Source: Macrostomum lignano
Taxonomy: Eukaryota
Reading direction: 5' to 3'
Assembly (NCBI GenBank): GCA_002269645.1
Contig: NIVC01003833.1
Location: forward strand, 1 to 25,566
Length of the DNA: 25,566 bases
Positions 4,435 through 24,338 of this stretch are shown piece by piece (the first letter of the stretch is position 1; every line of letters starts with the position of its first letter). The notes beneath the pieces are model-generated. The model saw only the letters and a program-made list of their open reading frames with translations, was not told the origin of the DNA and did not search any database. Both the position numbers and the translations under genes were made by a program.

Positions 4435-5730
4435 ATGGGCAGACTTCTCGAGCAGCCGCAGCCGCAGCCGCAGCCGCAGCCGCAGCCGCAGCCGCAGCCG
4501 CAGCCGCAGCAACCGCAGAAGCGCCAGTCGACCAGCAGTCGCCAGCCCGTTCCAGCGGCAAAGCAGTCGAACAATGTGGGCTCAGAAGCGAACTGGCTAG
4601 ACTCAGTCAGCACTTTCTCGGTGCCCGAGAAGTTGCTCCGCTTCGCGGCGACCATCCCTCAGGCGCCACCGTCCCGGCTGGCTTCTGCGCCGCCGCCACC
4701 GCTGCAGCTGCTTCCAGCCGGCGGTTTCATGTGCGAGTACCGCAACGGCGCCGCCGATGTGCGCGAGTTCTTCGCCCACCTCGGCTGGCCGCAGCTGCTG
4801 CCGAGGCCCAGCGAGAAAATGTGCGGCGGCGGCAGCGGCAGCAGCGTAGCCAAAAGCGTCGGTACCTGTGGCCCAGCCAACCGGCAGTGGAGCTGCGTCT
4901 GCGTGCAGTCCGCCCTCGCGGCCATGCCCGACTTCGCTTTCTTCTGGGGCAACCTGTCGTCCAGCACATATGCCCTGTGCATGGCGGCCAGCCAGCAGCG
5001 CCACAGGCCGATGGTGATGAACCGCATTCCCTGGGTGACGTTGATCAGCAACAAAAGCCAGCTGGCCGTCACCTGCATGGCGCACAAGCACTCCAGCACC
5101 AGCCTCTGCCTGCAGAGCCACATACCGGCTACATTCATCGTTGATCGAGACACAGACCGGAGCTCTCTGCCGGCGCTGGCCCGGCGCCTTCTGGCCATGC
5201 ACCCGGTGTGGATAGTGAAGCCGCACAACTACGCAAAGGGCGAAGGAATTCAGTTGGCATTTCGCGAGGACGGCGAGGCAGCGATGCTGCGCAGCCTGTC
5301 CAGCGACCGCTGGGGCATCGGCAAGGTGGTGCAGTGCTACATGACCGACCCCATGCTGCTCAGCGGCAAGAAGTTCGACTTGCGCGTCTTCCTACTCCTA
5401 GTAACCACCGGCTCAGGGCTGCTGGCGTTCTACCACACCGGCTACGTGCGGCTGGCGCTGAATGACTTTCTGGTCTGCGACAAGCAGCGCCTGGACACGC
5501 ACCTCACCAACCAGGCAGTGCAGGCCAAACAGTCTGGCTACGAGGCTAACAAGGAGGACACCATCTGGACGGTGCAGCAGATGAACAGCTACCTCAACCA
5601 GCTGCCGAGCAGCGAATTCGGCAACGACTGGACGATCAGGGAGCTGCATCCGAAGGTCAAGTTGCTCGTGGCCGCCCTGGTTGAGGCGCTGGCGCAGCGG
5701 GTGCAGAAGGACCGGCGCAACAGCAGCGGC

Positions 5731-5773
<43 letters not shown>

Positions 5774-6066
5774 GGGAGCGGCACCCGTGCCGGAACACGT
5801 TCAGCCTGCTGGGCCTGGACGTGCTGGTGGACTCGGCCGGCAAGCCCTGGCTGATCGAGGCCAACGCGGATCCCGCGCTCAGCCGGCAAACCCGGACATT
5901 GGAGCGGCTGCTGCCGACCATCACGGCGGAAGCATTCGGTCTGGCCATGGAGATCATCTACAAGTGCCACGGTGCCGACCCGCAGGCACCGGCACCGGCA
6001 GCCGAAGATTTGGCCTTCCTGCAGAACTTCCAGCACATTGGTTTCTACCCAGTGACAGAGAAATGA
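4435..6066 (+). CDS. TTLL10: Tubulin-tyrosine ligase-like protein, TTLL10-like (polyglycylase clade), intronless, 543 aa
   Basis: TTL motifs: WIVKP..AKGEGI, VVQCYMTDPMLLSGKKFDLRVFLL, GYVRLA, HLTN, FSLLGLDVLVD..KPWLIEANADPAL. HLTNQ and KEDTIWTV resemble vertebrate TTLL10 as recalled (HLTNQFMQ, KEHTVWSM). The subfamily call needs a phylogeny. Confidence 0.85.
4453..4509 (+). repeat. (CAGCCG)n coding microsatellite encoding a (QP)n tract
   Basis: Visible hexamer repeat near the TTLL N-terminus. Confidence 0.95.
5734..5772 (+). repeat. (CAG)13 encoding polyQ inside the TTL domain
   Basis: Pure CAG run just before the FSLLGLD motif. Confidence 0.95.
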
Positions 6067-6494
6067 GGGCCGGTCTCGCAGTGCTGCTGCTCAGCTCTGC
6101 TCGCTTTCAGTTTATAAAAGACGCGCGTCGCCAGTCCCTCCCTGGCCGGTGCCTCCTCATTTTAAGCGCCTCAACCTCGCGATGAGGCGTTTGGTTTTTT
6201 GTTGCAGATTTACAAGATAAGGAAGGCGTGAAAGTAAAAAAGTGAAGCAGTTCTTGTCCCGGAAATCTTCAGCATCTTTAATGCGTTTTAAATTTTGCTT
6301 AGCGCTGTTCGTGTGTGCTTTTGAAAATTGAAAAAAATCTCCAAATAGAGACACAGCTGCGCCCGATATTGGGAGACCTGCACCTGCTGCCTTCAACGAG
6401 AATAATTACACAGTAGATTGGCCGTTTGGTAAATTACTTCTAGCTGGCAAAATAAGTACAATAAAAGTAAAAGCATTTTTTGGAGTAGGTTTTT

Positions 6495-6690
6495 GGCATC
6501 ATGGCGCAACGCTTCTTTCGACACCATCCCACAAGCAGTGCTGGGCGACTCTTGACTCCTGCATACAACATACAAGCACGTAGGTGTACAGCGTGTACGC
6601 TATCTGTGCCTTGGAGGTTTGACTCTCATGGGTGTGATCGCACGACAGCCCCAATTGAATGTGACGCGGTTACCACTGAGCTGCTCTGCC
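6495..6690 (-). mobile_element. Degenerate tRNA-derived SINE, family B, copy 1
   Basis: The minus strand begins GGCAGAGCAGCTCAGTGG (A-box-like), matching the head at 12245. It shares CCAAGGCACAG, TGTACAC and TGCGCCA.G.TGCC with the 11684-12245 element. Confidence 0.55.
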
Positions 6691-6741
6691 CTTTTAATTA
6701 TCTAGCAAGGAAGGTGGCAACGCAATTAGATAACAACTTAC

Positions 6742-9700
6742 TCCACTGCAGACCGCGACACAAAAAGTGCAACCGCTGATCTTTCGGCGACTGCATCTTT
6801 ATCCTGGGCGCGATGAAGATGTCCTCGGACTTGAGCGTACCCGGCAGCAGGACAAAGTAGCCGGCATTCCTGGCCGGGTTCCACTTGACGGTCAGGCCGG
6901 CGGTCAGGGAGTATGGCGAGTTCACGCTGGAGGTGCAGCGTCTCGACTGCTTGTGCCGGATGGGCAGCGGAGTGTACTGGCTCTGAAGCGGTGGGAGAGA
7001 GAGTTGCGCCAGGCCAGGTCAGCGCTGAGTTCAGGCAGATGTCAGCAGTCTCTCTTCACCAACCAGAGCTGAATTAGCATTCAAGTCAGGCGTCGGGACT
7101 GCGGCTTAAGCCTCGTCAAAGTCCGTCCGACAGTTTAATTTATTTTTCGCTATCAAACCTGCATGCAATACTTGCCTACGCGGCATTCTACATTGAATTC
7201 TAATACTTCGCTACAGAAGTCCTGCGATAATATTGACTGAGAGCTCCTTGGCATACCCACCTGCTGATTAGGAGCATAGGGGAACACCGACGAAGCTAAT
7301 TTAAAAAATATCATTTCAGATTTCAAACTACAGAAACTTCGCCAATGTCTTGCCAGGTGCAAAAAGCGTGAAAATTAATCAAGCAAGACTCACGTCCAGG
7401 TATTGAAAGTTTCCAAACGGCACGGGCAGATATGTGGGGTAAGCCGACAGATAGTCGTACCACTGATCGAAGCCCTTCAGTTGTTCTGCGGAATTTTGGC
7501 ATTGACCTTTAGACTTAAAGTACATCCAAGACTTAAGCAATGCTCTCAGCTGAACGAGAAGTGTTTTATCTGCTCACTCTTGTCAACTACGGCGTTGATC
7601 TCCTCCGGGTAAAAGCCCAACGGCCGGATGTCGTCAGAGTCGACAGCGAACAGCCTGCCGTGCTGCAGATCCTCCGGCGGCGCCACCTCCAGAAGGCCGT
7701 CGCGGATGCTGGTGACGACGCCCGGCAACCAGGTCTGACCGACTCCGGTGCGGAACAGCAGCAGCATGCCGGGATGGAAGTGCAAGGTGGAAACGTGCTG
7801 CGGACAGTGTAGAAACAATCACGAATTTAGAGTGCCCAATTCGTTATGCGTACTTTTATTTTACTGGGCCAAGCTCGAGGGCATCATAAAGGTTACTTCA
7901 CTAAATTTCTCTGCGCAATAGGTGACACATTTTATCCAGTGCAATATGCCCAAACATAAAAAGTTGACGCCACTACAAACAAGATATGATAATGCGAACG
8001 ACGTGAATCAACTAATACCCGTATGGTACAAAGATGCATTCTGTAATTTTTTGAATTCGTCCTAGAGGCTCGAAAAATGAAATAAAATTACCGCAAACTG
8101 CGGACAGCCCAGAATGGCCAGGTTCCGACTTTCGGATGAGGGCTCTTGCTCCTCGAGTGGGTAGCGAGCTCGCACAAAAGCGTACAGCTGATCCGTTATG
8201 GGAGCTCGCAGCAAAACTTCGCTGTTGATTGAAACTTCCAGTTGGTTGAAGTAGCACTGAAATGAGTTTTTTTATAGTTAATTGCGTCTGCAGTGTCAAA
8301 CACTCGAACAGAATAACACAAATGGTCGGGGATTGCACAAGCATCGCCCAAATGGTCTGGGACTGCACTAGCATCCGCCAAAATGGTCTGGGACTGCACT
8401 AGCATCGCCAAAATGGTCTGGGACTGCACTAGCATCCGCCAAAATGGTCTGGGACTGCACTAGCATCGCCAAAATGGTCTGGGACTGCACTAGCATCCGC
8501 CAAAATGGTCTGGGACTGCACTAGCATCCGCCAAAATGGTCTGGGACTGCACTAGCATCGCTCAGATGGTCTGGGACTGCACTAGCATCCGCCAAAATGG
8601 TCTGGGACTGCACTAGCATCCGCCAAAATGGTCTGGGACTGCACTAGCATCCGCTAAAATGGTCTGGGACTGCACTAGCATCCGCCAAAATGGTCTGGGA
8701 CTGCACTAGCATCGCTCAGCTGGTCTGGGACTGCACTAGCATCGCCAAAATGGTCTGGGACTGCACTAGCATCCGCTAAAATGGTCTGGGACTGCACTAG
8801 CATCCGCCAAAATGGTCTGGGACTGCACTAGCATCGCTCAGATGGTCTGGGACTGCACTAGCATCCGCCAAAATGGTCTGGGACTGCACTAGCATCGCTC
8901 AGCTGGTCTGGGACTGCACTAGCATCGCCAAAATGGTCTGGGACTGCACTAGCATCCGCTAAAATGGTCTGGGACTGCACTAGCATCCGCCAAAATGGTC
9001 TGGGACTGCACTAGCATCGCTCAGATGGTCTGGGACTGCACTAGCATCCGCCAAAATGGTCTGGGACTGCACTAGCATCGCTCAGCTGGTCTGGGACTGC
9101 ACTAGCATCGCCAAAATGGTCTGGGACTGCACTAGCATCCGCCAAAATGGTCTGGGACTGCACTAGCATCCGCCAAAATGGTCTGGGACTGCACTAGCAT
9201 CCGCCAAAATGGTCTGGGACTGCACTAGCATCCGCCAAAATGGTCTGGGACTGCACTAGCATCCGCCAAAATGGTCTGGGACTGCACTAGCATCCGCCAA
9301 AATGGTCTGGGACTGCACTAGCATCCGCCAAAATGGTCTGGGACTGCACTAGCATCCGCCAAAATGGTCTGGGACTGCACTAGCATCCGCCAAAATGGTC
9401 TGGGACCGTACTAGCATCGCCAAAATGGTCTGGGACTGCACTAGCATCCGCCAAAATGGTCTGGGACTGCACTAGCATCCGCCAAAATGGTCTGGGACCG
9501 TACTAGCATCGCCAAAATGGTCTGGGACTGCACTACTCTGGGAGTATATCGCCACTCAAATAAACTACAAAGACGATTGCCCCCCGACACGCCTGAACAA
9601 AATTCAGGAATACAGTCACTTCTATCAGAGAATACAAAATATTTTCGATTCCGTAAGGCTTAAAAGTATCGATTTGAGTGTCTCTATCCAGGTTTTTGTA

Positions 9701-12700
9701 AGTTACATCTTTACAACTATTAGAAGCAGTTGATCAGAGAATAAGATGAAATGACGACTAACATCGTAGTGGTCGTTGTAGCAGCAGCCGGTGATTCTGA
9801 GCACCACATCCGTGATCGGCTCGTCAGCGGGCAGACTGTCGTCCTTAAGTTGCCTGACAAACTCCCAGTCGTGAAGAGCGCTTTTCTTCAAGCTAAACTT
9901 CAGCTGACGATCGCGAAGCGTCAGGCCAATGATGGCGTCCTCACTGGCGTCGTCATGCAGGGCCAACCAGACGGCCTGCTCGCAGCCGGGACGGTGCAGG
10001 AAGCTGACCTCCAGGTGGTCGAAGCTGGCGTGCCGCATCGGCAGGCGAGACCGGAGCAGCGTCTCCAGCGTCACCGGCTGATCCGAAGACTTTTCTTCGT
10101 CGAATCTGGGCCGGCTGGCCGCGACCAGCAGGTTGCCCTGCAAAGAGGCTGGCAGGCCAGACACCACGTCGAATGCCTTGGATGCGAAGGTCGGGTAGAC
10201 GCGACAGAAGTGGCGCCACATCTTCGCCACGGTTTTCTTCCACAAGAAGCAGTGCTCGCAGGAGAAGGAGTTCTGGTATCGGTCTATCCAGTCGTGCTGC
10301 GGAAACGGCGCCAGACGGTACCACATGAAGCGCCACTCGGCGTCGGTCATCTGCTTGGCGCGGCACTTGCTGCAGCTCTTGTGGTTGGCGAGTGTCCGGC
10401 CGACCTCCGGTACCGAAAAGGTGTTCTTTAGGCCCGAGTGAAAGCATTCACCGCGGCAGTAGACTCGCAGCTGCGGAGTTGATCCGGTTGGGTCGTGGTC
10501 AATTGGGTTGCGGCCAGTGAGGTTGTGGTCAATTGGGTTGCGGCCAGTGAGGTTGTGGTCAGTTAGGTTGCGGCCATTGAGGTTGTGGTCAATTGGGTTG
10601 CGGCCAGTGAGGTTGTGGTCAGTTGGGTTGTTGTTAGGTATTTGGTTATGATCGGATGGGTTGTGTTCGGTTGGATTGTAGACATTTGGGTTGCGGTAAG
10701 TTGCTGGGTTGCCGTCAGTTGCTGGGTTGGTGCCAGTTAAGTTGTGGTTAGTACTGAGACCACTAATCTACACAACAAACGGCAAACCATTTCTCCTACC
10801 GTCAATTACCTTCGATGGCCCCTCACTCAGATCACCCTTCACCAAACCTTGCCTCACATCTAAATACGCGTTGCACGTCATTACACCATTCATTGCAAAA
10901 TTCTAAGCACCTTAAAGCCTGTATGCACGCATAATTATGATGAAGCAATAATTAATGCTCTATAAAAACGCACCTTGTGATGCAGGTAGGGATACTCGGC
11001 AGCCACGGACTCCAAGGTGGTCAGCAGGTCGCTGAAGCAGGACCAGATGTACTCTTTGAGCGAGTCGCTGTTGGCCCCTGGCACAGTTTCATTCATGCGG
11101 CACTCGAAGTCAATGGAAGACGAAGCCAGGGCTGCGGTGCGGTGCGGATTTTAGGAGTCGTTTTGCAAAGGGAAACACTACTCAGAAGCAGAAAACTACA
11201 AAGCTTATCCCTCCCGTTTAGTGTAGCTGTAGCTGGGTCACGGAATAACAGTGAAGGAAAAAGAAAGATTGAGGCGGCTCATTTATGCATTCCCAATTTA
11301 CGCTCTTGTGGAATAGCTCCATCAATGGACGAACTCTTGGCTTTAACTAATGTTAAATTTACATTAAATACTGAATGCATCTGGACTGCCTAGGAACGAA
11401 ATTATCTCATTCATTTTGGATATCAATTGTCGAAGCAAATGAGATTTCAAACGTGACTTAATAATCATTATTTTAATTATGCCCAGGAAGGAGATGAAAG
11501 CGCGAATTATGGCTGCGGTAACTTGCGATAAGAAGAGATAGGCATGCATTCAGCTTCCCGCAGAATTTTACATCTTTAAAGAGAGAATCGGGACTTTTTG
11601 CTATTCAGCACTGTGGTGGAGTCGCTTTGGGCGCTGCCGTGGATCAAGCGGAGGACCCTTCAGACCCTTCAGCGCAGGCATACTATTTTTTATTAAAGGC
11701 AGGGGCTGTGGGCACCCTGGCGCACTTTAAGCGACATTGTCACACAACCGGCGAGAGGCATTGCTGCCCATTCCGCCGACTCCCCTGAGCAGGCACACAA
11801 GCGCGCGGATGCGTACGCAGTGATACGCACAGGCACACAATCACACAGGAGTGTACAGCGGCCCTAACTTTATTTATCGTTAGGCATGTACACTTCACTG
11901 TGCCTTGGGGGTTGTCCATCAAGGACGTTATTTACACGAGCAGAGCCAAGCCGAGATTCCAATTTAGCCCCAAATTAATGCGACTGCACTTGGAATCGAG
12001 CCTGGCACATCAGAGCGCTTCGCTGGACCACCGGGCTACGGCCCCTGCGCTCGCAGGCACACACTCGGCCCTAACCTTTTCGTTGTCAAACATGTACACT
12101 CTCTGTGCCCTTGGGGTCGGGGACGGATGGCCATGGGGCGAGCTTCGCAGCACGAATCAGATTTTTGCGCACGAGTCCCAAATTAATGTGGCCGCGCACA
12201 GAATCGACTTTGAGTTGAACGCATTTGCCGCTGAGCTGCTCTGCCTGCTACACCCAGGGCTCACTCGAATGCAGGCCGTAGGTGCAGAGGATGTCGCAGA
12301 CTCCGCGCTGCACGTGCATCCCGGTGCGCCACACCTGCACCACGCCGGTGGCCACGGGACTCTGCATGCAGGCGGTGGCGAACCTCGCCAGCAGGTTGGC
12401 GGGAAAGCCGACGCGGAACTTCACGGAGAACAGCAGGCAAATATCGCCGGGTGGGAAGTCCTCGGACTGCAGGTCCGGCATGTACATGCTCTTGTGGTGC
12501 CGCATGGAAAGCTTCTCTTCCGTGGCGCTGAATCGGATGGACACGCGGGGCTCCAGGCGCGACCAGAGGAAGTAGCGCCGGCTCGAGGCCTCCGCTGCGT
12601 GCTGAAGGCGGGCGACCCGGCCGGCCTGGGTGGACTCGCGAACCGTGTCCGTGTGGCCGAGCAGGCCGAAGCGAAGGAGGATGCGGCGCAAGGTCTCAGC

Positions 12701-15700
12701 CTGTGGAAGTTTGGTTTTTGCATCGCTAAGCATTAAGTTATTACTAATATGATGGACCCTCGATACCTTAGAAACGTTATGGTCAACGATTTAGTTCATC
12801 AGATTGCTATTTGAAGCCATCTGTGCGCACGTCGCAAACATTAACCAGATGGCTTGTCCGACATCACCAGACACATGAAAACAACTTCATAAACAATAGA
12901 AAAACACGTGCTAAGTCGTTCTAAAGCAAATAAACAGAAAAGCATTTCCAGAGACATACTTCATTTCCGTGGTGGCAGCTTTGAGGAATCACTAGTCAAT
13001 AGTCATACTGTCGCCTTTTGAGCTCTTCAGGAATTAGTATTCATAGCTCACAAAATGCATGACTCACCTCATCCTCGGTGGCTCCGGCAGCCAGCAGTTC
13101 AGCGCGCAGCTCCGCCTCGCTGAGGGCCGGCACATTGCGGCCGAGCGTCCAGCAGCTGTCGCCGTTGCGGTAGTCGGCGATGGCATCGAGATGGGCTAGA
13201 CAGGACATGAACCAGGCCAGGTCCAGCACCACTGGCTGGTTCGTCCCTTCCGGGAAGAAAAGCAGCTTGCCCTGCGATTAAATTTTTAAGAACTGTGATT
13301 TTCTTATCGAGTTTTACTACTCGTAGTAACAAGTACATAGCAGCAAATGAACCCTTTGGAAAGAATTTAAAATTATATACAGATTGCTACTGAATCTATC
13401 AAAATATATGTTATTTTTCTATCCTTCTATTCTTTGGGCAGACCAAGGCGCCGCAGTCCAGCAATCCCGCACCATTTGATGCAGCTTCTTCAGCAGCGCC
13501 ACAGTCCGCCGGCTCTCTCGCTGCGGCAGGCCAAGCTCAGACATCAGCACATTCAGTGGGAAGATTCGCCGCCACGACTGCTGCTGCTGCTGTTGCGACT
13601 GCTGAGCAGCCAGAAAGTCGCTCAGCCGATCAGCCAGTTGCCAGTTGGACTCGGTGAGGCGACGCGTCTCCCACAGCTGCAGCGACTCGGCGGCTGTTCT
13701 GGCCAGTTGGGTCACGTGACGCGCCAGACGATTACTCTGAGGTAGACAGGTGAGGAGGCAAGTGGAAATCGCAAATTGCACATCAAGGCTACAGTTCACC
13801 CGCAGCAGTAAGGAGGGGCAAGCAGTGACGCTCATTCTGACACCTAAGCCTCTAAATTCTACATGCAAGTGAAATAAGGAACGAACTTTGTTATGTTCGA
13901 CTGCTGAAACGAATTACTGTCTGTGATTCGTTTCTCATTTTAGTTTCGTACTGCTCGTTAGTAATAAATCCCTAGAATAGATTTCTCATTCGCTATGGAG
14001 TAATTCTCAATAGTTCCCGCCAGTCTAAACGTCACACAATGTACTCTTACCTCCTTTTCGATTCCCGCTGACTCAGCCACGGCTGCTCCAGCCGGATTCA
14101 GCTCCCGCTCGTGCTCCTTCACCAACAGCAGGTACTTGATCACCGCGTACACGTAGAGCCACATGCAGTTGATAATGTTAAACCACCGTTTCACCTGCGA
14201 GATGAGCGCTGTTTGTAGGAATTATAAATTAAATACGCAGAAGAAAGAATCAACTCTTACAGTTTCTCCAAAGGTCTCCCACTCTGGAACAAGGGCGGTC
14301 AGGTCCGCCAGCAGCTTGGCGTGTCTGCCCGAGAGAGACTCCGTCTGAAAGCGGATTTTTTGGGTTTGACTTAAGACGAATCAGGAAATTTTGGATTAGT
14401 TTACAAAGTGTCTCACAATGTAATTCGTGTCCTTGAAGCGCAACAGAAAGCGCGTCTCCGACACAAGGTTCTTTGCCGTTGGCCAGGCGTCGTCTTCCGT
14501 GAATGGAATGTCGAATATGAGCATAACGCACTTCATTGTGGTCACTACGACGGGTGGAGGAGCCGAAAGGGAGCGCAACTGAAAGAACAGAATGAGCATT
14601 TACAACTGTTGATAATCTGTGCATTCAGATTCAGATTGCATGTCAGATTCAGCTAACACTGACCTCCATGAAGTCCGCCTTGGTGCACCGGTCCAACGCG
14701 TCAATGGCAAACATCTACAAACAAGTAAGCAGTTGTTCTTTGTTTTACAGTACTTGTACCCGTACTGTACTTGAAGTAGTCTATTCCTAAAGCAAATGGC
14801 GAACAAGCAACTTACGTAATCGTGCTCCGCCCAATACTGCACTTGAGCTTGTACGTTGGAGTCCACCTTTACTTCCCGGAGTGTAGTCTCGAATACCTGA
14901 GAATGTTTGAATTCAAATTCCGGTTTAAAAAATCTGGCTCTTTCTGAGCCTAGGTGTCTTTTTGAATACAAGTAGTTTTCATTTGAAGCTCACCCAGTCT
15001 TCATTGAAGCCTTCGACTGGAACGGCAACCAAAGTGATGGGAAAGTGGGTTACATCCGCGCACTGAATCGACTGAACGTAACGCCACTGGTGCGGAAAGT
15101 CCTTGTCGTAGCAACTGAAGTTATGATTGAAGCAGCGTATTTCGTGTCTGAGAGATTATCTGATAGGCTGCTCAGAGCACAAAACGAAACTATTATTCTT
15201 ACCTATTTAAGTGCTCCTTCTCCAAGTGCTCCTTCATGTTGTCTACCTGATCCCTGAGCATGTTTTCCAGGTCGGATTTCAGCGAGGCAACATTCTCAAC
15301 CCCTTTCTGGCTGCTCACCGTCGCGACTAGAAGCAGCGGCGCTTCGAACACCTGCGACGGCGAGGCGCGTGACGATTAATGAAGGCGAAATACCTACGAG
15401 CGCACATTAAATGGACAGATCTGTCAGACTCACCGCTCCACGAACTGCGTCAATCATTCGCATAATTTCTAGCTGGGGATTCTCTGTGCGCTCCGCATCC
15501 ACTACCAGCACGAAACCGGCTGTGTTGGACATGAACAGCGAGCTGTACACCTGAGCAAGGGGTTTGGCGAAAAGTAATTGGGGACTAAGTACGATTCTAA
15601 ACATTTGAAAATCGTCCTCATCTGCGATGCCTATGGTCAAGCACAGGCTAAACTATTTAAACAAATTCATAGATTTGACAAGGTTTTGAATTAGGCAAGA

Positions 15701-18226
15701 CCTAATGATCTCTTTAAGGCACTGTGCCCTGCGTGCTATACGCTTTAATATTTTATTGCAAATATATATTAATAACTTTCGATCATTGCACTTATTTAGA
15801 GAGGCTTGAAGCCTACGTAGTAAGAGCGTCGGACTCAAGACTGAAAGGTCGGGGGTTGGATTCTCGACCCACTCGGAACAATTTGTGTCCTTGAGCAGGA
15901 CACTTAACTCTGCATTGCTTCAGTTCACCCAGCTGTAAAATGGGTGCCAGCATTAGCTGGGGTAACTGAGGGGGTGTGTATGGCGACCCCCCCCCCAGTC
16001 CGTGCTTGCTCGTGGGATCGACACACGCAAGGCTATCAAAACACGCTTGAATTCACTTCACCCAGTTTAACACTCCTTTCACTTGACCAGTGCACTTACT
16101 AGGTCTGCGCGCATCTCGAACACAGTCAGGTCCAGGTCGCCAACAGTGGCTGAGAGCGCTCGAAAAGTCGGTGGGGGCTGCACAGACGACGTTACCGCCG
16201 ATTTTGACGACGACGGCCTCGACTTGGAGCTGGAAGATGGCTGAGCTCCGCCCACCGCGCCTGGTAGAGCTAGGGCGCCAATGCTGACGGTTACGGCCGG
16301 GTCGCAGATGATGGCCAGCTTCACTGGTAGGCGAGCGATGGTGGACACCGGTCCTGGCGTGTGGGGGGACAGCAAGTGGGTTCTTGGCAAAAAAGTAGTC
16401 AAATTTCGCCTTGATTTTCGGCAGTTCCCAAAGCCCGCACTGCGAACTAACAAAGTAAACTGACATCATCATGTTCGTTTACAAACAACATAACATTTTC
16501 CTGTCTGATCAATGCTCTCCATAGATAGTCCCAACTCTATAAGTAATCTGATATGATGCACGTTACCAAGGGCAGCTATATTTGATCCGATGCCCAGTTA
16601 CAACAGGCACAGCAGCAAAAATTCTAAGAGAAGTTTTCCCTATGCATATATTCTAGTTATAGTCGATTTTTTCCATGCAGAGCCCGTTATAAAAGCTACC
16701 TGTCAGTCCATAGCCCAAACGTTTAACACAACAGCTGGGAAACAATCATTCGGGACTGGAGTCCTGCTTGAGCCCACCCTAAATGACCTGTTGTCCTCGG
16801 GCACAAATTTGATTTCTCCTCACTTTGTCTAGCTATTACAGTGTAAGTCTACCGAAACCGACCTCCCAATTGGAACTTATAGCTCGACTTGCGAGTGTAG
16901 CAGCGTCCTACATGCACTTTTGCTGCTCATGTTAAGTAGCTCTTAAGCAATGGCACTCACCGTCGATAAACTGACACGCCGGATCGCTCAGAACTTGAAA
17001 ACCGAGCTGCCTGGAGCCGCAGTGTGTCAGTCCGGTGCCCAGCATGCTGACAGACTTCAGGTCTCGACAGTGCTTTCCCAGGTAATGCAGACTTCTTTCA
17101 GTGAGCAGCCGGCAGCCGTCAAGGTTAAGCTGCTGAAGGCGGGGGAACGCGCGGGCCAGGTGAGCCATGCCGTCATCCCGAAGGTGCCGGCAACCAGCGC
17201 AGGAGACTCGAGCAACTCGGACTCTGGCCTCGTCTGGCACGGATGTTTCCAGCAGGTGAAACACCTCATCAGTTAGCTGTTCTATGCCGTCAAAATCAAG
17301 GTGAAACTCTACGCCTTTCTCGCCGAACCAAGTTGGTAGTTTTGCCTGCGTAAGGCGGTTTTATGGATCGTTAATGTAGCATGTCCACGGCACATTTATT
17401 ATACCCGTTAGACTTTTTATGACGTCATTATTGTAACAGTTGGACTGTCTATGACCTCGATATATTGTACCAGTTGGACTGTCTATGGCATCGATATTGT
17501 TACCAGTTGGACTGTCCATGAAATTGATATTGTACCAGTTGGACTGTCAACGACATTGATATTGTACAAGTTAGAATGCCTATGACATTGATATTGTACT
17601 AGTTTGACTATCTGTGACATTGATATTGTAAGTTGGACGGTCTGTGGCATCGATATTGTACCAGGTAGACTGTCTATGGCTGGTTTGATGTACCATGCAG
17701 GTTTATGGTACCAATCCTGTTTATTGCCAGCAAACTTTTAAGAATCCACGCCAAGGATCTTTGCTATTGTGAAAACTGTATCGTTAATTTTACCATCTGA
17801 TCTTATATTCAATATATCTTTATTTAACCTTCATATCGTTTGTAATGCTACAGTGATAAGTGCAATACTACTTCTAGTAGTACAATTTGATTCATAGAAG
17901 CAAATTCTGCAATCAAGCCAGTCAGGCGAGTCTACCGTAATCACATCTGCGGATTGACTGCGTGCGCATGCTTTTATAAATCACGCGTGAAGGTATAATG
18001 CCAAAATATTATTAGAGGAAGCCTTGTCAATATGCAATACATGTGTAAATAAGTATTCTAAATATAGTACTCGCTGCGCTAAAACAAGGCTTTGACCGCA
18101 TCCATTCAAACATAAAGAGCCAATCAAATCGTACAAACTCACCAACAGCTTTCTAAGCGGGATCTGCTCCTGCACCTCCAGCTCATTGTAGAAATGTTCA
18201 AAGTTTATTAGCTTCACTGCAGACAT
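6742..18226 (-). CDS. ROCO-like protein 2 (~1450 aa): Cys-containing LRR, degenerate Roc with dynein MTBD-like insertion, COR, uncharacterised C-terminal domains
   Basis: Phase-consistent GT-AG exons with no internal stops: 18226-18143, 17345-16961, 16639-16567, 16439-16100, 15550-15434, 15351-15203, 15147-14994, 14896-14816, 14714-14664, 14578-14417, 14344-14261, 14194-14051, 13736-13473, 13271-13068, 12700-12265, 11131-10974, 10470-9763, 8256-8092, 7797-7578, 7485-7394, (7221-7180), 6982-6742. These sum to 4354 nt. The terminal exon is uncertain, possibly 6701-6694 (AT AAT TAA). Exons 3 and 21 are the least certain. Confidence 0.8.
8325..9535. repeat. Minisatellite, 30/31-bp unit (CAAAATGGTCTGGGACTGCACTAGCATCCGC), about 39 copies, in a ROCO2 intron
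   Basis: Near-identical head-to-tail units with no spacers. Confidence 0.97.
9763..10470 (-). CDS. ROCO2 exon 17: Cys-rich end of COR plus a beta-rich, weakly SPRY-like region
   Basis: 708-nt open phase 0-0 exon (ccgcag acceptor, GAT|gttagt donor) extending ORF 9703..10350 upstream. It contains CRGEC, CSKC and CEHC motifs. Confidence 0.75.
10495..10630. repeat. Minisatellite, 30-bp unit (AATTGGGTTGCGGCCAGTGAGGTTGTGGTC), about 4.5 copies, decaying to ~10730
   Basis: Visible tandem copies in the ROCO2 intron between exons 16 and 17. Confidence 0.9.
10974..13736 (-). CDS. ROCO2 exons 13-16: COR domain (COR-A and COR-B)
   Basis: COR-A-like: LLKKLHQM|GKLLFF..VVLDLAWFMSCL and ETLRRILLRFGLL. COR-B-like: KFRVGFPANLLARF..VWRTGMHV and LTTLESVAAEYPYL..VYC. 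Confidence 0.8.
11684..12245 (-). mobile_element. Tandem dimer of tRNA-derived SINE family B units
   Basis: Two units with ~207-bp periodicity (CGGCCCTAAC at 11859 and 12066; CCAAATTAATG at ~11971 and 12178). The unit starting at 12045 has A-box TAGCCCGGTGG, B-box GGCTCGATTCC and an A-rich end near 11690. Confidence 0.6.
14051..14714 (-). CDS. ROCO2 exons 9-12: dynein heavy chain stalk / microtubule-binding-domain-like module
   Basis: The spliced sequence AIDALDRCTKADFMELRSLSAPPPVVVTTMKCVMLIF..DAWPTAKNLVSETRFLLRF..ESLSGRHAKLL..VPEWETFGETVKRWFNIINCMWLYVYAVIKY matches the dynein stalk-head consensus (A..AL..I.K.D..E.RS...PP..V......V..LL....W..AK......F...L ... P.F..E.V.R.S.....M..WV.A...Y). 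Confidence 0.82.
15203..16439 (-). CDS. ROCO2 exons 4-6: Roc-like G-domain with degenerate nucleotide-binding motifs
   Basis: PVKLAIICDPAVTVSIGALAL (beta1/G1 position), DLDLTVFEMRADL|VYSSLFMSNTAGFVLVVD (G3 to beta4) and APLLLVATVSS (beta5/G4) follow the order of elements in Roc. Confidence 0.7.
15801..16001 (+). mobile_element. CORE-type tRNA-derived SINE, family A, copy 1 (intronic, antisense to ROCO2)
   Basis: tRNA-like head followed by TGTGTCCTTGAGCAGGACACTTAACTCTGCATTGCTTCAGTTCACCCAGCTGTAAAATGGG, which resembles the CORE/MIR core. Nearly identical to 25037-25232. Confidence 0.85.
16961..17345 (-). CDS. ROCO2 exon 2: Cys-containing (FBXL/AMN1-type) leucine-rich repeats
   Basis: LDFDGIEQLTDEVF, VSCAGCRHLRDDGMAHL, LQQLNLDGCRLLTERSLHYL and LKSVSMLGT fit the LxxLxLxxCxxLTDxxL pattern. 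Confidence 0.85.
17430..17680. repeat. Degenerate minisatellite, ~32-bp unit (TTGTACCAGTTGGACTGTCTATGACATTGATA), about 8 copies, in ROCO2 intron 1
   Basis: Visible tandem copies with several substitutions. Confidence 0.9.
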
Positions 18227-19856
18227 TACAATTGCATTGTTGCAACTTTTTTTCAAATAAAATTTGCTTGATCAGAAATTTAACCACACAAGTGAGTGAG
18301 AATATTTGGCTTTAAACCTCATAATTTTTTTCACTCGTTTAGAAGGACAAAAAACGGTTCAAGATGAACTATTTCGGCTGAGTTCTCACAAAAAGACTAT
18401 TTTTAGCTTAGCTTGTAATTTGGTATAATAAAAAAAATATATATACGAGCGTATTTACCTACTTTAAGCTAGTAGCATATTATTATTGCTACACATTTTA
18501 CTCATTTTGTACATGAGTATTGAAATTTGTTTTATAAAGTTATACCAAATTACAAAATTTTGAATAATTTGGTTAAATTTTTAGACAATAAAAATAGAAA
18601 TTAGTGTGCATTAGTAGTATTTATTCATGCAGTGCTTTATTTGACAATCTTATAAAGCATCGGCTTATCTGTTTTTATTGAATACATTGCAGTTAAATTT
18701 TAATCCAATTCGTACCTACAACCAAAAGCTACAAGCAATTTTTAGTTAAAATGATTCAATAGTAAGTTGCAAAAATTCGTTTTTTGTCGCTGTCACTAAC
18801 CAGTCAAAACTGTTTGATATAAAAAAACAATAAGAAATATTAAAATTTAAAACTTGCTTATACTATAGCATCTAATTTAATTACTCTCGTAGTCTCGTTG
18901 TATGCATTCTGTTCTTTGAAATGTTAATAAGTATATACTATATAAGCTGCAGCTAAATAGCTAATGAGCACAGAAACCATAGGAAAAGATACAAGTTTTG
19001 AAGCGCAATAAATTATGAGCCACAACCTTCAGTGTTAAAAAACCGAGGGGATAGTTTCAATATCCAAGTAAAAGTTCGACAGCCAGATAATCCACTTATT
19101 TGTCTGATAATATCGAATACAAATGCGGAGTATCTCTAAAAAACAGTAACATGAAAAAGCAAACGAAATTTAATATAGATTTTTCTTGAAGCTGAAATGG
19201 TGGGAGGACGCCGTGAGAAAAACTGCCATGCAATTGATAAAGATTAAAAACCATTGTGGATTTTAGGAAATAAGGGTGCATTTTTTTATTTTAAATTTTT
19301 TCTTGTAAATAGAAATTTCTTTGCTTCACTTGAATGGAGCTAGTAAAAATTGTTTTAATATACTACAGTCCATCCAATCCGTCTAATTGCATATTAATGA
19401 AACGAAAGAAATGTGGAAATTTTCAATACGTATTTTATCATGTTAGTTAAGTTATTTCGAAAATTTAAAGTTCTAAAAATTAAAATTTATAGTTTTTCAA
19501 CAATTACTTCGAGCTACATTGCGTCTTCTTCTCAATTCAGAATAACGTTAAGTTGAATACATGCATTTTACATGACGTAAAATAGAATATACTTTCTTTG
19601 ACTCGGGGTCCTGTAACAAACTCATCTAAACTGATATACTGTCAAAAGTTCAAACCTAGAACATACATGTATATGCTGCATTTTGCATGATATACTGCAG
19701 TGCATCTATACTTTTAGCCACGTACGTATGTGATGCATACTATCAGAACTCTCCGATTCTATTTTGATCGGTATCAACTTTCAGTTTATAGCTTATTACT
19801 ACATGTACATGAAATTGCTTGCGAACCAAAAAATGGCGGATTTTTATTGTGCAATA

Positions 19857-20022
19857 CCAGGGGCCGTCGCCATGGATTTTATGGTGGGGGGACAAAGCCA
19901 AGAGTTCAACATGTACATGGTGGGGTCACAAGGTGGGGGTGGGGGGCAAAGCATTGGCATGCCCCCAGAGGTTTTACTGGGAGGGGGACATGCCCCCCCT
20001 GTCCCCCCTGGTGTAATACTGG
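19857..20022. mobile_element. Possible decayed non-autonomous DNA transposon (MITE-like) in AT-rich DNA
   Basis: A GC-rich island starting CCAGGGGCCGTCGCCATGGATTTT and ending GGGGACATGCCCCCCCTGTCCCCCCTGG..CTGG. This layout is common to small metazoan non-autonomous elements, but the termini match poorly. Confidence 0.35.
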
Positions 20023-20747
20023 AGTAGAATGTATAATAGATGTGTACAGATATCTTGAAACTTTGATTGTATCCCAAAAAAGGAATTAAGACTTCCTGTG
20101 AAGCGCATATGGGTTTGAAAAAATCTGTGGGCATATTTTTATACATGTAACCTATGAAAATCGAAAAATGAACATGTAGCATTTAACAAAGCATCTGATT
20201 AGTATACTTTTATTTGGCCTCATTAGACCTTACATGCATTACGATATCGAAAAAATTGTATATTGAATACATGTAAAATCAAGAGTTTATATGTACCCCC
20301 CAGCTTACACGTACTTTATCGATTCGGTGTTGCTTTCGCTTTTTTAATCATTTTTTGTTGCAGTGAGCAGTGAGTATGTACGTGCATATAGAGATCATGG
20401 TACATTGTATGAAAAACAAAGAAGAGTCATATTATTAATCAATGATCGAGTTTACCTTAAAATTGAAATATTTTTAAGTTGAATTCATGCAAATATACAA
20501 AATATGAGCCAAGCGATTCAAAGCAAAACTGGTCAGATACTGTACAATAATGCACGTCACAAGGTTTTCATTTGCATGCGTACAAGCTAGGCGCTTTTCT
20601 CTACCAACATGCTTCTGCAGCTTACATATCATTTCAGTTGGCACAGATAAAAGGGCTGCCTGGGTTAGAAAAGTAAGTCTCGATCGCGTGGCCTGAACAA
20701 GAGCAGCAGTCGCACAGTAACCAGCCTGTTTTCTAAAAAAGCTAGCC

Positions 20748-21236
20748 ATGGCCCTGCCGCTGTGGCTTCACGCCTGCACTCTGTGGTACCTAGTCAGCAA
20801 TGCCATCATCGCCTACAAGAGCTGGCCTGCTCTGCCTGGTTTCTTCGCTGCCTGCTACATTGCCGGTCTGTTTGGCGGTCTCGGCGATCACGTGGAGCCC
20901 TACGTGCCCGCTGAGTACCACGCCTACACCACGCAGATCATGGAGAACTACATCGGCAGATTCCCGCTGGCTTTGTCAGCTGTGGCCATTCTGCTGCGAT
21001 TCTGCACTCTAGACAGCGTGTCCTTGGGTAGCAAGCTGCGCTCCCTGGCGATGCTGGTTGCGCCCCTCGTCGTGCTGATTTCGCACAAGCCGACCGACTA
21101 CAACACCGACTGGATGTGGCACCTTGTGCACTCGACTGTAGTTCACGGCCTCTTGCTGGCTGCAAATCTGCGCATTCTCGGCGCCATGGCTCGGCACAGT
21201 TCGAAAAGGGTTGATGCTGCAGCTAAGGAGGAGTGA
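20748..21236 (+). CDS. Uncharacterised intronless multi-pass membrane protein, 162 aa
   Basis: Strong start context (gccATGG), GC3-rich codons like the neighbouring genes, 4-5 hydrophobic segments and a basic/acidic C-terminal tail. Confidence 0.75.
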   Translation: MALPLWLHACTLWYLVSNAIIAYKSWPALPGFFAACYIAGLFGGLGDHVEPYVPAEYHAYTTQIMENYIGRFPLALSAVAILLRFCTLDSVSLGSKLRSLAMLVAPLVVLISHKPTDYNTDWMWHLVHSTVVHGLLLAANLRILGAMARHSSKRVDAAAKEE

Positions 21237-21803: not shown

Positions 21804-24338
21804 TCACCCATCACCAAGGTGGTCTTCCAGCACGGAAGCGATCCTATCGTAGAAGACCACTCGGCCCGGAAAGGCTTCGCTGAGGTTGAAGCGGCGCATT
21901 CGTTCAGAAGCCGCGAACTCGTAGCCCAAGTGTAGAAATCTGTGCACTCCCAGACTGGCTTCACGGCCGGCCTCCGGGCTGATGTTAACTTCGTCCAGTT
22001 GCTTCGCAGCCAACTGTCGGCAGCCCAGTCGCCAGTGGTCAATCTCGACCTCCTCCGGCGTGCCGGTCACTGTTTCTTCTGCTCACTGTCCTTAGCGATG
22101 ATGGTCACTGCATTTGAAACTAAAATGACCTTAAATATTACATGCACAGCGGGCCGCACAGAAAGCTTCAAAACTAGTCTGATCTTAGACCTGCTTACAC
22201 TCGTGGTTGCAGAGCCCCTTCCAATTTCGATTCGGATTCATCCAGGCCGAGAACAGGACGTATGCAGCAGCACAGGGTGGCTTTCTACCAGCCAGGGAGT
22301 ACTCGGTGTACTTCCTGAGAGCTGCGGCCCGGTGCTGTGCACTATGGAGGCTTCGCCGCTCCGCTCGGGAAGCGCGCGGACCATCAGCCGGAAAAACGGG
22401 TGTCGCGGCGGAGCTGCCATGACGGAGTTCATGCCAGGAAGGCGCGGCCCCACACAATCCGAGTCTGCTCCGGCCGCTCCTGGTCGAGAAGGGCCGCCAT
22501 CTGCCAGGCCTTGTCTAGGAGAGGTGTCAGCGGTTGCAGGCACTGAACATCCATGTCCAGGTAGACACCTGTGCAGTATAGGGTTGACTACTTTCTTCAT
22601 TGAATCCGATATGGTCTTCTAAAGTCTTCTAATCATGTCTAGCTAATATAAAGAGGATTAAATAAGGAGCCGTAGGAGCGTTCAGATTTACAATAAAATC
22701 CCCGAGGTCCACTGATTTGAGCGTAGCCAATTTCACACCCTTTCTGCACTGCACTTAATGGTGTACTTAATAGCATACCCCCGAAGAGATACAGCGCTGC
22801 ATATCGGACCGCATCGGAGCGCTGCAGGTCGCTGCCGTAGCCCCTGTACACTGGCAGCAAGTTCGGGAAATTGTCTGCCAGCAGGCGCTCTGCGTCCGAG
22901 TTGCGCCAGAGCACGTAGGTGAAGTCCGGGTTAGCCGACAGACAGCTGTTGATGAAGGGCCGATAGTTCTCATAGACCAGCTCGCTGGTGAACACCTGGT
23001 GCAATAGGCGACGGAACGGAGCTGCACCGCCCGGTTGAGACTGGCGTTGCTGAAGCTGCCAGTGAAGAAGGCTGACAATCAGCGGGCAGGCGATCTGAAA
23101 GCTCAGGTTCAGCAATCGGCTAAGATGGTCAATAATGAGAGTGTTTTTAAGAGTGCGCTGTGCTCAGGAATTAGCTTGTGACATCTCTGTAACTGTTACA
23201 GCATTTATTATTTTTTTTAAAGGCTGGGGAGTTGATGTCCCGCGATTTGCTGGAGTAAAAGTTCTGTCCTCAACTATATGAAACTGTAAGGCTCTACAGA
23301 GGGTCATCGGCAACTTTTTTCCTTTTTATGGTTCAGACGTCTGCTTTAACTGTCCTGAAGTTGTTCTGAACTAATGTTGCCAAACTAAGATCTATGGCAT
23401 TCTGGTGGATCGGGAAAGCGATATAATCCACTAAGCGTCTCTCGACTAGGGGGGGGGGTGGCGTGTGACTGTTGTTGAATGCTTGCTGTTCGATTCACTT
23501 CTATTCCCTCACGGCACAGAATGTATACATTCTTGAAGATGACAAAGTCAGGGCAGCTGAACAGCCTGTGTTCAAACTGCATTCAATTTCGGCAAACTGG
23601 CTTTCATTTTCGGCATCAGCTATGGCCGCACATCCAAACTGCATTTGAATTCGACAAACCGAAAACCAATTTCGGTAAACTGCATTCAATTTCGGCAACT
23701 TGAGTTTCTATTTAGACAAATTGATATTCAAATTCGGCAAACTGCATTCAATTTCGGCATCGTATTTTCAATTTCGGCAGCCAGCGCCTCGTGCCACAGA
23801 CTGTCTATGGAAATAGACGCATCTAAACCCAAAACTGATATTCAATTTCTATATTCAATATTCAATAGACAGTCTGTGGCACGAGGCGCTGCTGCCGAAA
23901 TTGAATGTAGAGATGACGCACTCCGCGCACGAGTGTCTATGGTCGTTGCTGCACGCTTCTATGGTAAAAACAAAAGCGCAATTGTTTGACAATGCAGTTT
24001 GCCGAAATTGGTTCTCGGTTTGTCGAATTCGAATGCAGTTTGGATGTGCGGCCATAGTTGATGCCGAAAATGAAAGCCAGTTTGCTGAAATTGAACGCAG
24101 TTTTATCGAAATAGAACGCAAAAAGGTGTAAATGCACTGCCGATACAAAAAAACGAAAGTCCTTCCAGTGAATTTCTAAGAAAACCATGACTACACGGGT
24201 CAACTGTCACCTGCGTTGAGTTGTGCCAGTGCCCGAAGCCCTTCTGTCAACTATTTAACAATAAACACTCACCAGAATCGTTGCAAGAGTTAAACGTTTA
24301 GATGGATACTGCAGGGCTCTGTAGAAGCCTGCAGCCAT
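21804..24338 (-). pseudogene. Glycosyltransferase family 32 (DXD; OCH1/SUR1-like) type II membrane protein with three 1-nt frameshifts (assembly errors or pseudogene)
   Basis: Exons 24338-24273 (MAAGFYRALQYPSKRLTLATIL), 23094-22779, 22568-22199, 22107-21804. Motifs: LHQVF, NPDFTYVLW, LQRSDAVRYAALYLFGG|VYLDMD, MNSVMAAPPRHPFF, HSTGPQL and GVHRFLHLGY. Frame switches occur near 22435, 22318 and 22075. Confidence 0.85.
23574..24103. repeat. Nested inverted repeat (foldback/MITE-like) in GT32 intron 1
   Basis: Outer arms 23574-23686 and 23991-24103 (113 bp each, few mismatches). Inner arms 23767-23808 and 23865-23905. The internal motif AAACTGCATTCAATTTCGGC is repeated. Confidence 0.88.

Follow-up and report, generated by a model that had tools for sequence, protein, structure and literature searches.

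A probable degenerate, nucleotide-free Roc-like domain in a large protein of the flatworm Macrostomum lignano

Results

The minus-strand candidate gene 'ROCO2' of Macrostomum lignano probably encodes a degenerate, nucleotide-free Roc-like domain within a flatworm microtubule-associated scaffold. It was studied in a window of 25,566 nucleotides, the whole stretch of DNA that was analysed. The more specific assignment of the region as a strongly degenerate remnant of a Roc-type (Ras-superfamily) G domain, which would have no nucleotide pocket and would be a class-I-style pseudoGTPase in a large flatworm protein, is given an even chance. The initial annotation had proposed a nucleotide-independent scaffold or regulator kept under selection. 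This proposal is in agreement with the absent motifs, the intact gene, the conservation of the domain and a profile link to Roc and Arf, but the G fold that it presupposes is putative.

The gene consists of a run of 18 exons, each bounded by canonical GT-AG sites and all in agreement in phase, which together give a stop-free product of 1,355 aa. This length is a lower bound (at least 1,350 aa); a 5' exon that carries the ATG was not located. From the N-terminus, the predicted protein contains FBXL-type leucine-rich repeats (LRRs), the Roc-like domain, a stalk with a microtubule-binding domain (MTBD), a COR-like region, a Cys-rich region and a conserved C-terminus. The long open reading frame that had been described is preserved as stop-free coding sequence, but it is assembled from 18 in-phase exons and is not a single ORF.

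Motif positions of the Roc-like domain

Exon B (16100-16446, minus strand) encodes the first half of the domain. It contains the β1-like KLAIICD, where the P-loop position is degenerate (16321-16265), then a low-complexity, Ser/Pro-rich stretch (~16264-16178) and finally the β2/β3-like TFRALSATVGDLDLTVFEMRADL, whose G3 position is 16126-16103. Exon C' (15434-15550, minus strand) follows with VYSSLFMSNTAGFVLVVDAERTENPQLEIMRMIDAVRGA as the equivalent of switch II, β4 and α3. Exon D (15203-15351, minus strand) encodes the β5-like APLLLVATVSS with the G4 position at 15330-15310 and then a long helix (VENVASLKSDLENMLRDQVDNMKEHLEKEHLN). Its final base, 15203, is the end coordinate of the domain as initially annotated. 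Exon E (14994-15114, minus strand; CYDKDFPHQWRYVQSIQCAD(VTHFPITLVAVPVEGFNEDW)) is flanked by in-phase GT-AG sites and may contain a β6/G5-equivalent.

The pseudoGTPase claim was built on three strings, and all of them are exact minus-strand translations, namely KLAIICDPAVTVSIGALAL (16321-16265), TVFEMRAD (16126-16103) and LVATVSS (15330-15310). None of the canonical motifs GxxxxGK[ST], DxxG and [NT]KxD/THxD is present in 'ROCO2', as had been stated. The P-loop of the neighbouring ROCO1, KLMFVGLGGAGKTSLMRAL, which had served for comparison, is real as a spliced product but is not contiguous in the genome. Its first part, KLMFVGLGGAGKT, lies at 829-791 and is followed by the donor AG/GTGAGA; after the acceptor ..CCCGTCAG/C, the frame continues with LMRAL down to position 8.

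Conservation in flatworms

An exhaustive phmmer search with the domain over 1.84 billion representatives found only two relatives, one from M. lignano itself (P0001, E=1.3e-45) and one from the monogenean Cichlidogyrus (P0002, E=3.8e-5). The latter is the orthologue and is ~28-33% identical in the domain, a level close to that seen in the LRRs and in the COR-like part. M. lignano is a member of the Macrostomorpha and Cichlidogyrus of the Neodermata/Monogenea. Because the Cichlidogyrus orthologue is also without G1, G3 and G4, the motif-less state is old and maintained, and the similarity kept at this divergence argues for purifying selection. At the ~30% protein identity of this sole orthologue, synonymous sites are saturated. 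A domain that was already motif-less has therefore been conserved between the two lineages in an intact gene, in agreement with the initial view of a gene under selection and not in decay.

Exon A and the N-terminus of the orthologue share ~30% identity, and the KEHL.KE helix of exon D is conserved in the orthologue as well. Compared with the Cichlidogyrus locus L001, exons K-N were 27-38% identical. The best-conserved part of the protein crosses the junction of exons N and O and extends into the first half of the latter (37% identity, E=1.4e-31 in tblastn). Exon O (9763-10470, minus strand) encodes the Cys-rich conserved region (LRVYCRGECF..CSKCRAKQM..). The conserved C-terminal region is encoded by exons P-R (7797-7578, 7485-7394 and 6982-6742, minus strand); it had no Pfam match and was 34-41% identical to the same locus (E=2.4e-20).

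Relationship to Roc-type G domains

A two-sequence profile of the domain was aligned to a Roc profile with hhalign and gave a probability of 53% and E=1.3e-4 over 65 columns in the G3-to-G4 register; these statistics are soft because the Neff of the profiles is just 1.3-1.6. The real score was 29.3, compared to a maximum of 20.3 in 300 column shuffles and 12.5 for reversed profiles. Arf1 (31.0) and Rac1 (16.9) were aligned in register, with NTPIILVGT of Rac1 placed like PLLLVATV. Non-GTPase controls, among them CheY, adenylate kinase, thioredoxin, MCM AAA+ and TTL, scored 18.8 or less and were out of register. The alignment set VFEMRAD on VWDFAGQ and PLLLVATV on PVILVGTH of LRRK2, which places the proposed G3 and G4 positions beyond chance. 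At the G1 position, VKLAIICD on TKLMIVGL outscored every other local match in the N-terminal half; the placement is nevertheless marginal, as 1/100 shuffles was as good. The N-terminal half in general matched marginally and is largely low-complexity and Ser/Pro-rich in the window.

Direct tests of family and fold did not confirm a G domain. An alignment to Roc HMMs had been suggested as a check, and Pfam Roc (PF08477), Ras and Arf gave no match at E<=1 for the single exons, the spliced protein or the Cichlidogyrus orthologue. No GTPase in the PDB was found with the domain by phmmer or profile search. AlphaFold2 was run twice on the domain of the orthologue with the window exons as alignment rows, and the pLDDT was between 20 and 60, mostly <50. 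The strand and helix pattern that had been described was not confirmed by the model, in which the C-terminal half is strand-strand-helix-strand-helix at pLDDT <60, and Foldseek on this low-confidence model returned nothing significant (best E=0.26).

Given these results, the most serious alternative is that the domain is not a G domain but a flatworm-specific small α/β or partly disordered linker, whose likeness to Roc and Arf would come from a short convergent motif of a β-strand plus acidic residues. This explanation is considered rather unlikely, although it would account for the outcome in Pfam, the PDB, AlphaFold and Foldseek. It also fits the modest hhalign probability and the fact that ~24 of the 29 score units came from one block of ~15-20 columns at switch II/β4 in block shuffles, a block that is exon C' for Roc and Arf1 alike. 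The low-complexity insert in the N-terminal half, where helix α1 is not evident, points in the same direction. However, the match is collinear across β3, switch II, β4, α3 and β5, and its register was repeated with Arf1, Rac1 and each of three Roc sequences and with either orthologue by itself. Neither shuffles nor unrelated real proteins ever attained the hhalign score, the best N-terminal match is the expected β1, and the adjacent gene encodes a true ROCO.

The position of the domain after the LRRs and before the COR-like region resembles that of Roc in LRRK2, LRRK1, Methanosarcina barkeri Roco2 (4WNR) and Chlorobium tepidum Roco (3DPU). The switch II/β4 segment LFMSNTAGFVLVVD corresponds in register to FFLTNRAVYLLV.D of Roc, as do β3 and the β5 strand PLLLVAT to PVILVGT. 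Another shared feature is the true ROCO member as genomic neighbour. Unlike Roc, the domain is without G1, G3 and G4 and goes undetected by Pfam Roc.

Nucleotide-binding positions

Nucleotide binding is retained by some pseudoGTPases. Following this precedent, the domain could be a G domain that still binds nucleotide via a non-canonical pocket, as a nucleotide-binding pseudoGTPase or an atypical GTPase. The acidic residues E.M and D.E, which are kept in both orthologues, would be compatible with such a pocket. Still, this is improbable in view of the G1, G3 and G4 positions, which read KLAIICDPAVTVS, FEMRAD and LVATVSS in the window and LVILVSNPGINLN, VEMHTQ and LLNLYKSS in the Cichlidogyrus orthologue. 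The Gly, Lys and Ser/Thr of the P-loop, the glycine of DxxG and NKxD/THxD are all missing in both species.

A degenerate Roc-like domain of this kind would be similar to the nucleotide-free pseudoGTPases, in which a G-domain-like module within a larger protein has lost its motifs, is yet conserved and presumably serves as an interaction scaffold. CENP-M is a pseudoGTPase that binds no nucleotide. The domains pG1 and pG2 of p190RhoGAP and the N-terminal domain of AAGAB are likewise described as pseudoGTPases that bind no nucleotide in individual reports (PMC5593906 and PMC12490416, respectively). These three examples were established by crystal structures and nucleotide-binding assays, whereas the fold of the flatworm domain and its lack of binding are predicted. 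No Roc-derived pseudoGTPase was found in the literature searched.

LRRs and dynein-type stalk module

Exon A (16961-17345, minus strand), which begins at an acceptor, encodes LRRs of the F-box/FBXL type. In phmmer against the PDB, it matched FBXL2 (E=1.9e-13) and FBXL17 (E=7.6e-9), and the Pfam family LRR_At5g56370 was found with E=2e-5. The N-terminal Cys-containing LRRs are shared with both FBXL proteins. In contrast to these, an F-box was not found in the 'ROCO2' model, the 5' end of which is incomplete, and the other architecture is unrelated.

A dynein-type stalk tip and MTBD, which had been overlooked in the initial annotation, is encoded by exons F-J (14896-14816, 14714-14664, 14578-14417, 14344-14261 and 14194-14051, minus strand) between the Roc-like domain and the COR-like region. 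In phmmer against the PDB, DNAH6 was matched with E=1.9e-8, and twelve of the 13 matches were dynein heavy chains, all at their stalk/MTBD. Pfam MT (PF12777) was matched with E=0.0039, below its cut-off. About 150 aa align with DNAH6, DNAH10 and Chlamydomonas outer-arm chains, in a region that covers the helices of the MTBD and the first part of the return coil. The module shares ALD..KAD..E.R...PP and (D)WPTAK with the dynein MTBD, the latter within DAWPTAKNL at 14491-14465 (minus strand). The flanks of the stalk were classed as coiled coil by visual inspection.

Searches of the whole model against the PDB and Pfam showed no similarity to dynein beyond the stalk/MTBD. 'ROCO2' is without the AAA+ ring, linker and tail of dynein heavy chains, its flanking coils are shorter and its multidomain host is of a non-dynein type. 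As judged from the predicted sequence, the protein is not a dynein. In the Cichlidogyrus locus, the MTBD module was undetectable; a stretch that had been picked out by eye as its equivalent was unsupported by BLASTP and PDB phmmer and was discarded.

As the domain lies directly N-terminal to the stalk, it could also derive from a P-loop AAA+ module that was acquired together with the dynein stalk/MTBD (AAA4-stalk) and not from Roc. In that case, FVLVVDAE would represent what is left of Walker B, in line with the hhhhD.E pattern kept in both orthologues. This origin is hardly probable, however, since the dynein alignments end at the stalk/MTBD and do not enter the domain. In addition, phmmer with the domain against the PDB gave no dynein or AAA+ protein, and the MCM AAA+ control scored 13 in hhalign, whereas GTPases reached about 20-31 in register.

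The presence of the module makes the likely function of the protein different from the one first proposed. We infer that the Roc-like domain would have a G fold that binds no nucleotide, that the protein may bind microtubules, and that it most likely originated by duplication of a ROCO-type ancestor with subsequent loss of the GTPase chemistry. The dead G domain would then serve not as a switch but as a fixed structural hub between LRR and stalk, anchoring the base of the stalk, which would dock the protein on microtubules. That a ROCO-derived protein kept its dead Roc as a base and captured a dynein stalk/MTBD between Roc and COR is put forward only tentatively. Under this reading, the domain would be the first Roc-type pseudoGTPase, and flatworms would have a static ROCO-like microtubule-docking scaffold that is encoded beside its active ROCO paralogue. 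Such a capture of a dynein-type MTBD module by a non-motor protein would, if confirmed, be unusual and, to the extent of the literature searched, would give the first non-dynein protein with this module. It would, moreover, offer a natural test of whether such a stalk can bind microtubules with no AAA+ ring to set its registry.

COR-like region and ROCO status

Exons K-N (13736-13473, 13271-13068, 12700-12265 and 11131-10974, minus strand) encode the return coiled coil and then the COR-like region, which includes ..LLKKLHQMGKLLFFPEGTNQPVVLDLAWF.. and ..YPYLHHK. Pfam COR-A was matched by the protein of the window only, with E=0.0057 and a score of 17 bits, where the cut-off is 35.3. Support for COR was absent in the orthologue at the Cichlidogyrus locus (Pfam), in a PDB profile search and in hhalign against an LRRK2 COR sequence. 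The COR-like region lies ~200-250 aa away from the Roc-like domain, with the stalk/MTBD exons in between.

The Parkinson's disease protein LRRK2 belongs to the ROCO proteins, whose action is attributed to a GTP-controlled Roc-COR switch. Retention of the module in a natural relative that binds no nucleotide would reveal which functions of Roc-COR are purely structural. The family is described as defined by the Roc-COR tandem (PMC6337361). 'ROCO2' differs from its members in the FBXL type of its LRRs and in a COR that is unconfirmed, not adjacent and separated by the dynein-type stalk/MTBD. With no Roc match and a sole COR-A match below threshold, its naming as a ROCO protein is not established.

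Gene model and splicing

Two frames of exon B are open, of which just one, the frame used in the initial annotation, is splice-consistent with the donor of exon A and matches the Cichlidogyrus orthologue; the frame-1 reading is neither splice-consistent nor conserved and was rejected. Alternative in-phase splice sites are present for exons C, D and E. For exon C, an in-phase acceptor at 15652 would give 34 aa more. It was rejected because the alignment with the orthologue (IYFTPFLAERSVFIIVTDTEQ...) has no room for them, and the exon after TVFEMRADL most likely begins at 15550 (VYSSLFMSN...). Exon E has an in-phase alternative donor after 15054, which gives a shorter form used by the older M. 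lignano model P0001; homology evidence for exon E was not found. The older model also partly uses the second frame of exon B and hops between the frames. Since its out-of-frame pieces are 100% identical to other frames of the window, the hopping fits indel errors of an older assembly. An exact-product lookup matched no record for this model or for the TTL ORF.

The least probable of the graded alternatives is that the exons are decaying or mis-modelled by pseudogenisation, skipping or a wrong frame of exon B, and that no such domain is made. It could draw on the splice-site and frame alternatives described above for the predicted gene, including the hopping in the UniProt model, and on a GC3 that is lower in exons A-F (0.55-0.73) than in exons K-R (0.65-0.90). 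It is countered by 18/18 exons that are in phase, stop-free and bounded by canonical sites, by a frame that is conserved in Cichlidogyrus at the E-value of the exhaustive search, and by the indel explanation for the older model.

Neighbouring ROCO1 gene

ROCO1 (1-2557, minus strand) contains LRRs (Pfam LRR_14/LRR_8) and the beginning of a genuine Roc domain (KLMFVGLGGAGKT/S/LMRAL) and extends beyond the window. Its orthologue at the Cichlidogyrus locus was recognised by Pfam Roc with E=1.2e-15 and matched MbRoco2, LRRK2 and LRRK1 in the PDB; near the P-loop, the identity between the two is 70%. The true ROCO gene adjoins 'ROCO2' in both genomes. M. lignano is a laboratory model for which RNAi and transgenesis are available, which makes the gene experimentally tractable.

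It was also considered that 'ROCO2' and ROCO1 are a single gene with a TTL gene nested in an intron, as the annotation of the Cichlidogyrus locus joins the two orthologues into one. Against this, the reading frame of the last 'ROCO2' exon may continue up to a stop at 6700-6698, and the gene would then be convergent with TTL; given this read-through, the TAA at 6700-6698 is the probable stop of 'ROCO2'. The window as a whole is eukaryotic sequence that is rich in introns.

Gene structure and GTP-binding motifs

The window is eukaryotic and rich in introns, with a GC3 of ~0.8–0.9 in confident exons. The minus-strand gene ROCO2 was modelled by hand from its splice sites and comprises 18 consecutive exons (A–R, 17345 to 6742) with 1,355 codons without a stop, which bears out the long open reading frame of the initial annotation. 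GT-AG borders and compatible phases were found for 18 of 18 exons. The Roc-like domain (exons B–D) had been described as lacking the canonical motifs G1, G3 and G4. Inspection of the sequence agrees, and the three cited strings are exact minus-strand translations of 16321–16265, 16126–16103 and 15330–15310. The comparator from the neighbouring LRR-Roc gene ROCO1 is likewise the correct spliced product, namely KLMFVGLGGAGKT (829–791), an intron-split Ser and LMRAL down to position 8.

The previously assigned end of the domain, 15203, is an exact exon end. Exon C most likely starts at 15550 according to the alignment to the Cichlidogyrus casuarinus protein; thus, spliced ROCO2 reads ..TVFEMRADL/VYSSLFMSNTAGFVLVVDAERTENPQ.. 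and pairs with ..NIVEMHTQS/IYFTPFLAERSVFIIVTDTEQ.. of Cichlidogyrus. Exon B (16056–16478, minus) has two overlapping frames open for >125 codons. GC3 rises from 0.55–0.73 in the 5' exons A–F, the Roc-like domain included, to 0.65–0.90 in the 3' exons K–R; it is 0.80–0.85 in the exons of ROCO1 and of the tubulin-tyrosine-ligase (TTL) family gene. The gradient could be positional or could reflect weaker codon selection or younger sequence.

Fold of the motif-less domain

Pfam gave no Roc, Ras or Arf match for the domain, and neither phmmer nor a two-sequence profile matched it to the PDB. AlphaFold2 was run twice on the Cichlidogyrus orthologue with the window exons as extra alignment rows. The LRR reached a pLDDT of ~80 and the domain 20–60. 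Due to this low pLDDT, the Foldseek search with the domain model (best E = 0.26) was uninformative.

The domain was also aligned with hhalign to a Roc profile made of the Roc sequence next to the Cichlidogyrus orthologue, MbRoco2 and LRRK2 (first 100–125 residues of each from database output, with the LRRK2 tail added). It matched with a probability of 53% and E = 1.3e-4 over 65 columns, in the register proposed initially, pairing VFEMRAD with VWDFAGQ, FMSNTAGFVLVVD with FLTNRAVYLLV.D and PLLLVATV with PVILVGTH. The score was 29.3, compared to a maximum of 20.3 among 300 column shuffles and 12.5 for reversed profiles. Either orthologue singly gave the identical register, and single Roc sequences scored 20.5–24.9, also in register. 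Arf1 matched in register with 31.0 (FQNTQGLIFVVD) and Rac1 at β5; H-Ras was the exception among the GTPases with 12.1, out of register. The controls CheY, adenylate kinase, thioredoxin, an MCM AAA+ domain, the TTL domain and other window proteins stayed at ≤18.8, out of register.

The best explanation of these alignments is a degenerate Roc-type G domain, to which we give roughly an even chance, since a single block of ~15–20 columns supplies ~24 of the 29 score units in block shuffling, the Roc match of the N-terminal half is marginal and the expected α1/switch I segment is mostly Ser/Pro-rich low complexity in the window. The best local match of that half is the predicted β1 (VKLAIICD/TKLMIVGL), equalled by one of 100 shuffles. 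The pseudo-GTPase reading of the initial annotation is partly supported: it stands as to missing motifs and register, but its Roc fold found no match in Pfam or the PDB and no confident model. A convergent motif in an unrelated α/β or linker domain is the less probable but serious alternative. From its motifs, the domain would not be expected to bind nucleotide; that it is a G domain still doing so non-canonically seems improbable. The domain fold and the expression of the gene are unproven.

A dynein-type stalk and microtubule-binding module

The gene also holds a stalk tip and microtubule-binding domain (MTBD) of the dynein-heavy-chain type, overlooked previously, in five small exons (F–J, 14896–14051, minus) after the Roc-like domain and before the COR-like region. 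The module matched DNAH6 with E = 1.9e-8; 12 of the 13 listed matches were dynein heavy chains of several classes, each aligned at the stalk/MTBD. Pfam MT gave E = 0.0039, and the motifs ALD..KAD..E.R...PP and DAWPTAK are kept. LRR, domain and MTBD exons are also united in an older M. lignano model. The module was undetected in the Cichlidogyrus locus, where an assembly gap lies at that spot. The rest of the ROCO2 protein has no dynein resemblance. That the domain is an AAA+ remnant acquired along with the stalk is improbable too, as the dynein similarity stops short of it.

The ROCO2 protein may act as a scaffold without switching. The dead Roc-like domain would link the LRR to the coiled-coil stalk, whose tip would bind microtubules, while the COR-like and Cys-rich parts might supply dimerisation or partner binding. 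Of this mechanism, the anatomy alone is observed; microtubule binding is predicted from sequence similarity. It is an appealing idea, and one that a laboratory flatworm allows to be tested. Neither a ROCO-MTBD combination nor a Roc-type pseudoGTPase was found in the literature searched. The protein would be a variant of two known types, the pseudoGTPases and the multidomain ROCO-like proteins, to which the dynein-type module is an unexpected addition.

ROCO membership

The name ROCO2 implies a ROCO gene, which is not established. Its LRR is of the FBXL2/FBXL17 type. Downstream, the sequence looks COR-like by eye, with a winged-helix-like LLKKLHQMGKLLFFPEG..PVVLDLAWF and then ..EYPYLHHK. Pfam COR-A appeared on the window protein only (E = 0.0057, 17 bits, below the 35.3 cut-off), and neither a PDB profile search nor hhalign against LRRK2 COR matched this region. 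A true ROCO gene has remained next to it in both the window and Cichlidogyrus, which lends circumstantial support to a common origin.

Relatives and conservation

Exhaustive phmmer against 1.84 billion representatives recovered the M. lignano UniProt entry A0A1I8FPG5 with the ROCO2-region protein. Those of its pieces that are in frame match the window at 96–100% identity, and the remainder translate the window's other frames exactly; the entry is thus a frame-hopping model of an indel-ridden older assembly. The window belongs to M. lignano, a free-living flatworm, or to a very near relative. In exon B the entry switches between the two frames; this and its name, 'FSA_C domain-containing protein', seem to be artefacts of that assembly.

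This entry aside, the only true relative of the domain among these representatives was KAL3313544.1 of the monogenean C. casuarinus (E = 3.8e-5). Its locus (JBJKFK010001275.1) carries an orthologue of nearly the whole gene, with identities of 30% in the LRR, ~28–33% in the domain, 27–28% in the COR-like part, 37% in the Cys-rich part (E = 1e-31) and 34% in the C-terminal part. A genuine LRR-Roc gene, 70% identical to ROCO1 near the P-loop, follows ~350 nt downstream. The deposited annotation (3595–12830) cuts the orthologue at the assembly gap (N run ~5374–5470) and gives its C-terminal two thirds and the LRR-Roc gene a single, fused product of 1,563 aa.

P-loop, DxxG and NKxD/THxD are all absent from the monogenean orthologue. 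Macrostomorpha and Neodermata are widely separated flatworm lineages; since both share the domain without its motifs, it is old and has been kept, which argues against decay and favours the retention proposed initially. Mis-modelled or decaying exons are an improbable explanation, as all exons are in phase and the proposed frame is conserved across species.

Other features of the window

The TTL gene (4405–6066, plus; Pfam TTL E = 2.7e-35) is one large exon that separates ROCO2 from ROCO1; it runs on the other strand and converges with ROCO2. Its N-terminal region translates as a (QP)n repeat, or in another frame as a long poly-Ala run, and an internal poly-Gln run also occurs; the gene's exact 543-aa product had no database record. 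An AT-rich stretch (18000–20000, GC 0.30–0.36) separates ROCO2 from an apparently hydrophobic, membrane-protein-like ORF (20721–21233, plus; no Pfam match) and a glycosyltransferase exon with the DXD sugar-binding region (22642–23163, minus; Pfam Gly_transf_sug E = 3.7e-7). A stretch at 15830–15990 (minus), in the intron between exons B and C, resembles by eye the T-arm of a tRNA-derived SINE (..GGGTCGAGAATCCAACCCCCGACC..); ARAGORN called no tRNA anywhere in the window. Four minisatellite arrays lie in a ROCO2 intron (8320–9535, 31-nt unit x40), in the ROCO1 intron splitting the P-loop codons (85–534, 35-nt unit x13), just upstream of exon A (17396–17695, 32-nt unit x9) and just upstream of exon O (10487–10703, 15/30-nt unit); read in the frame of exon O, this last array is open and gives NPxDHNLTGR repeats.
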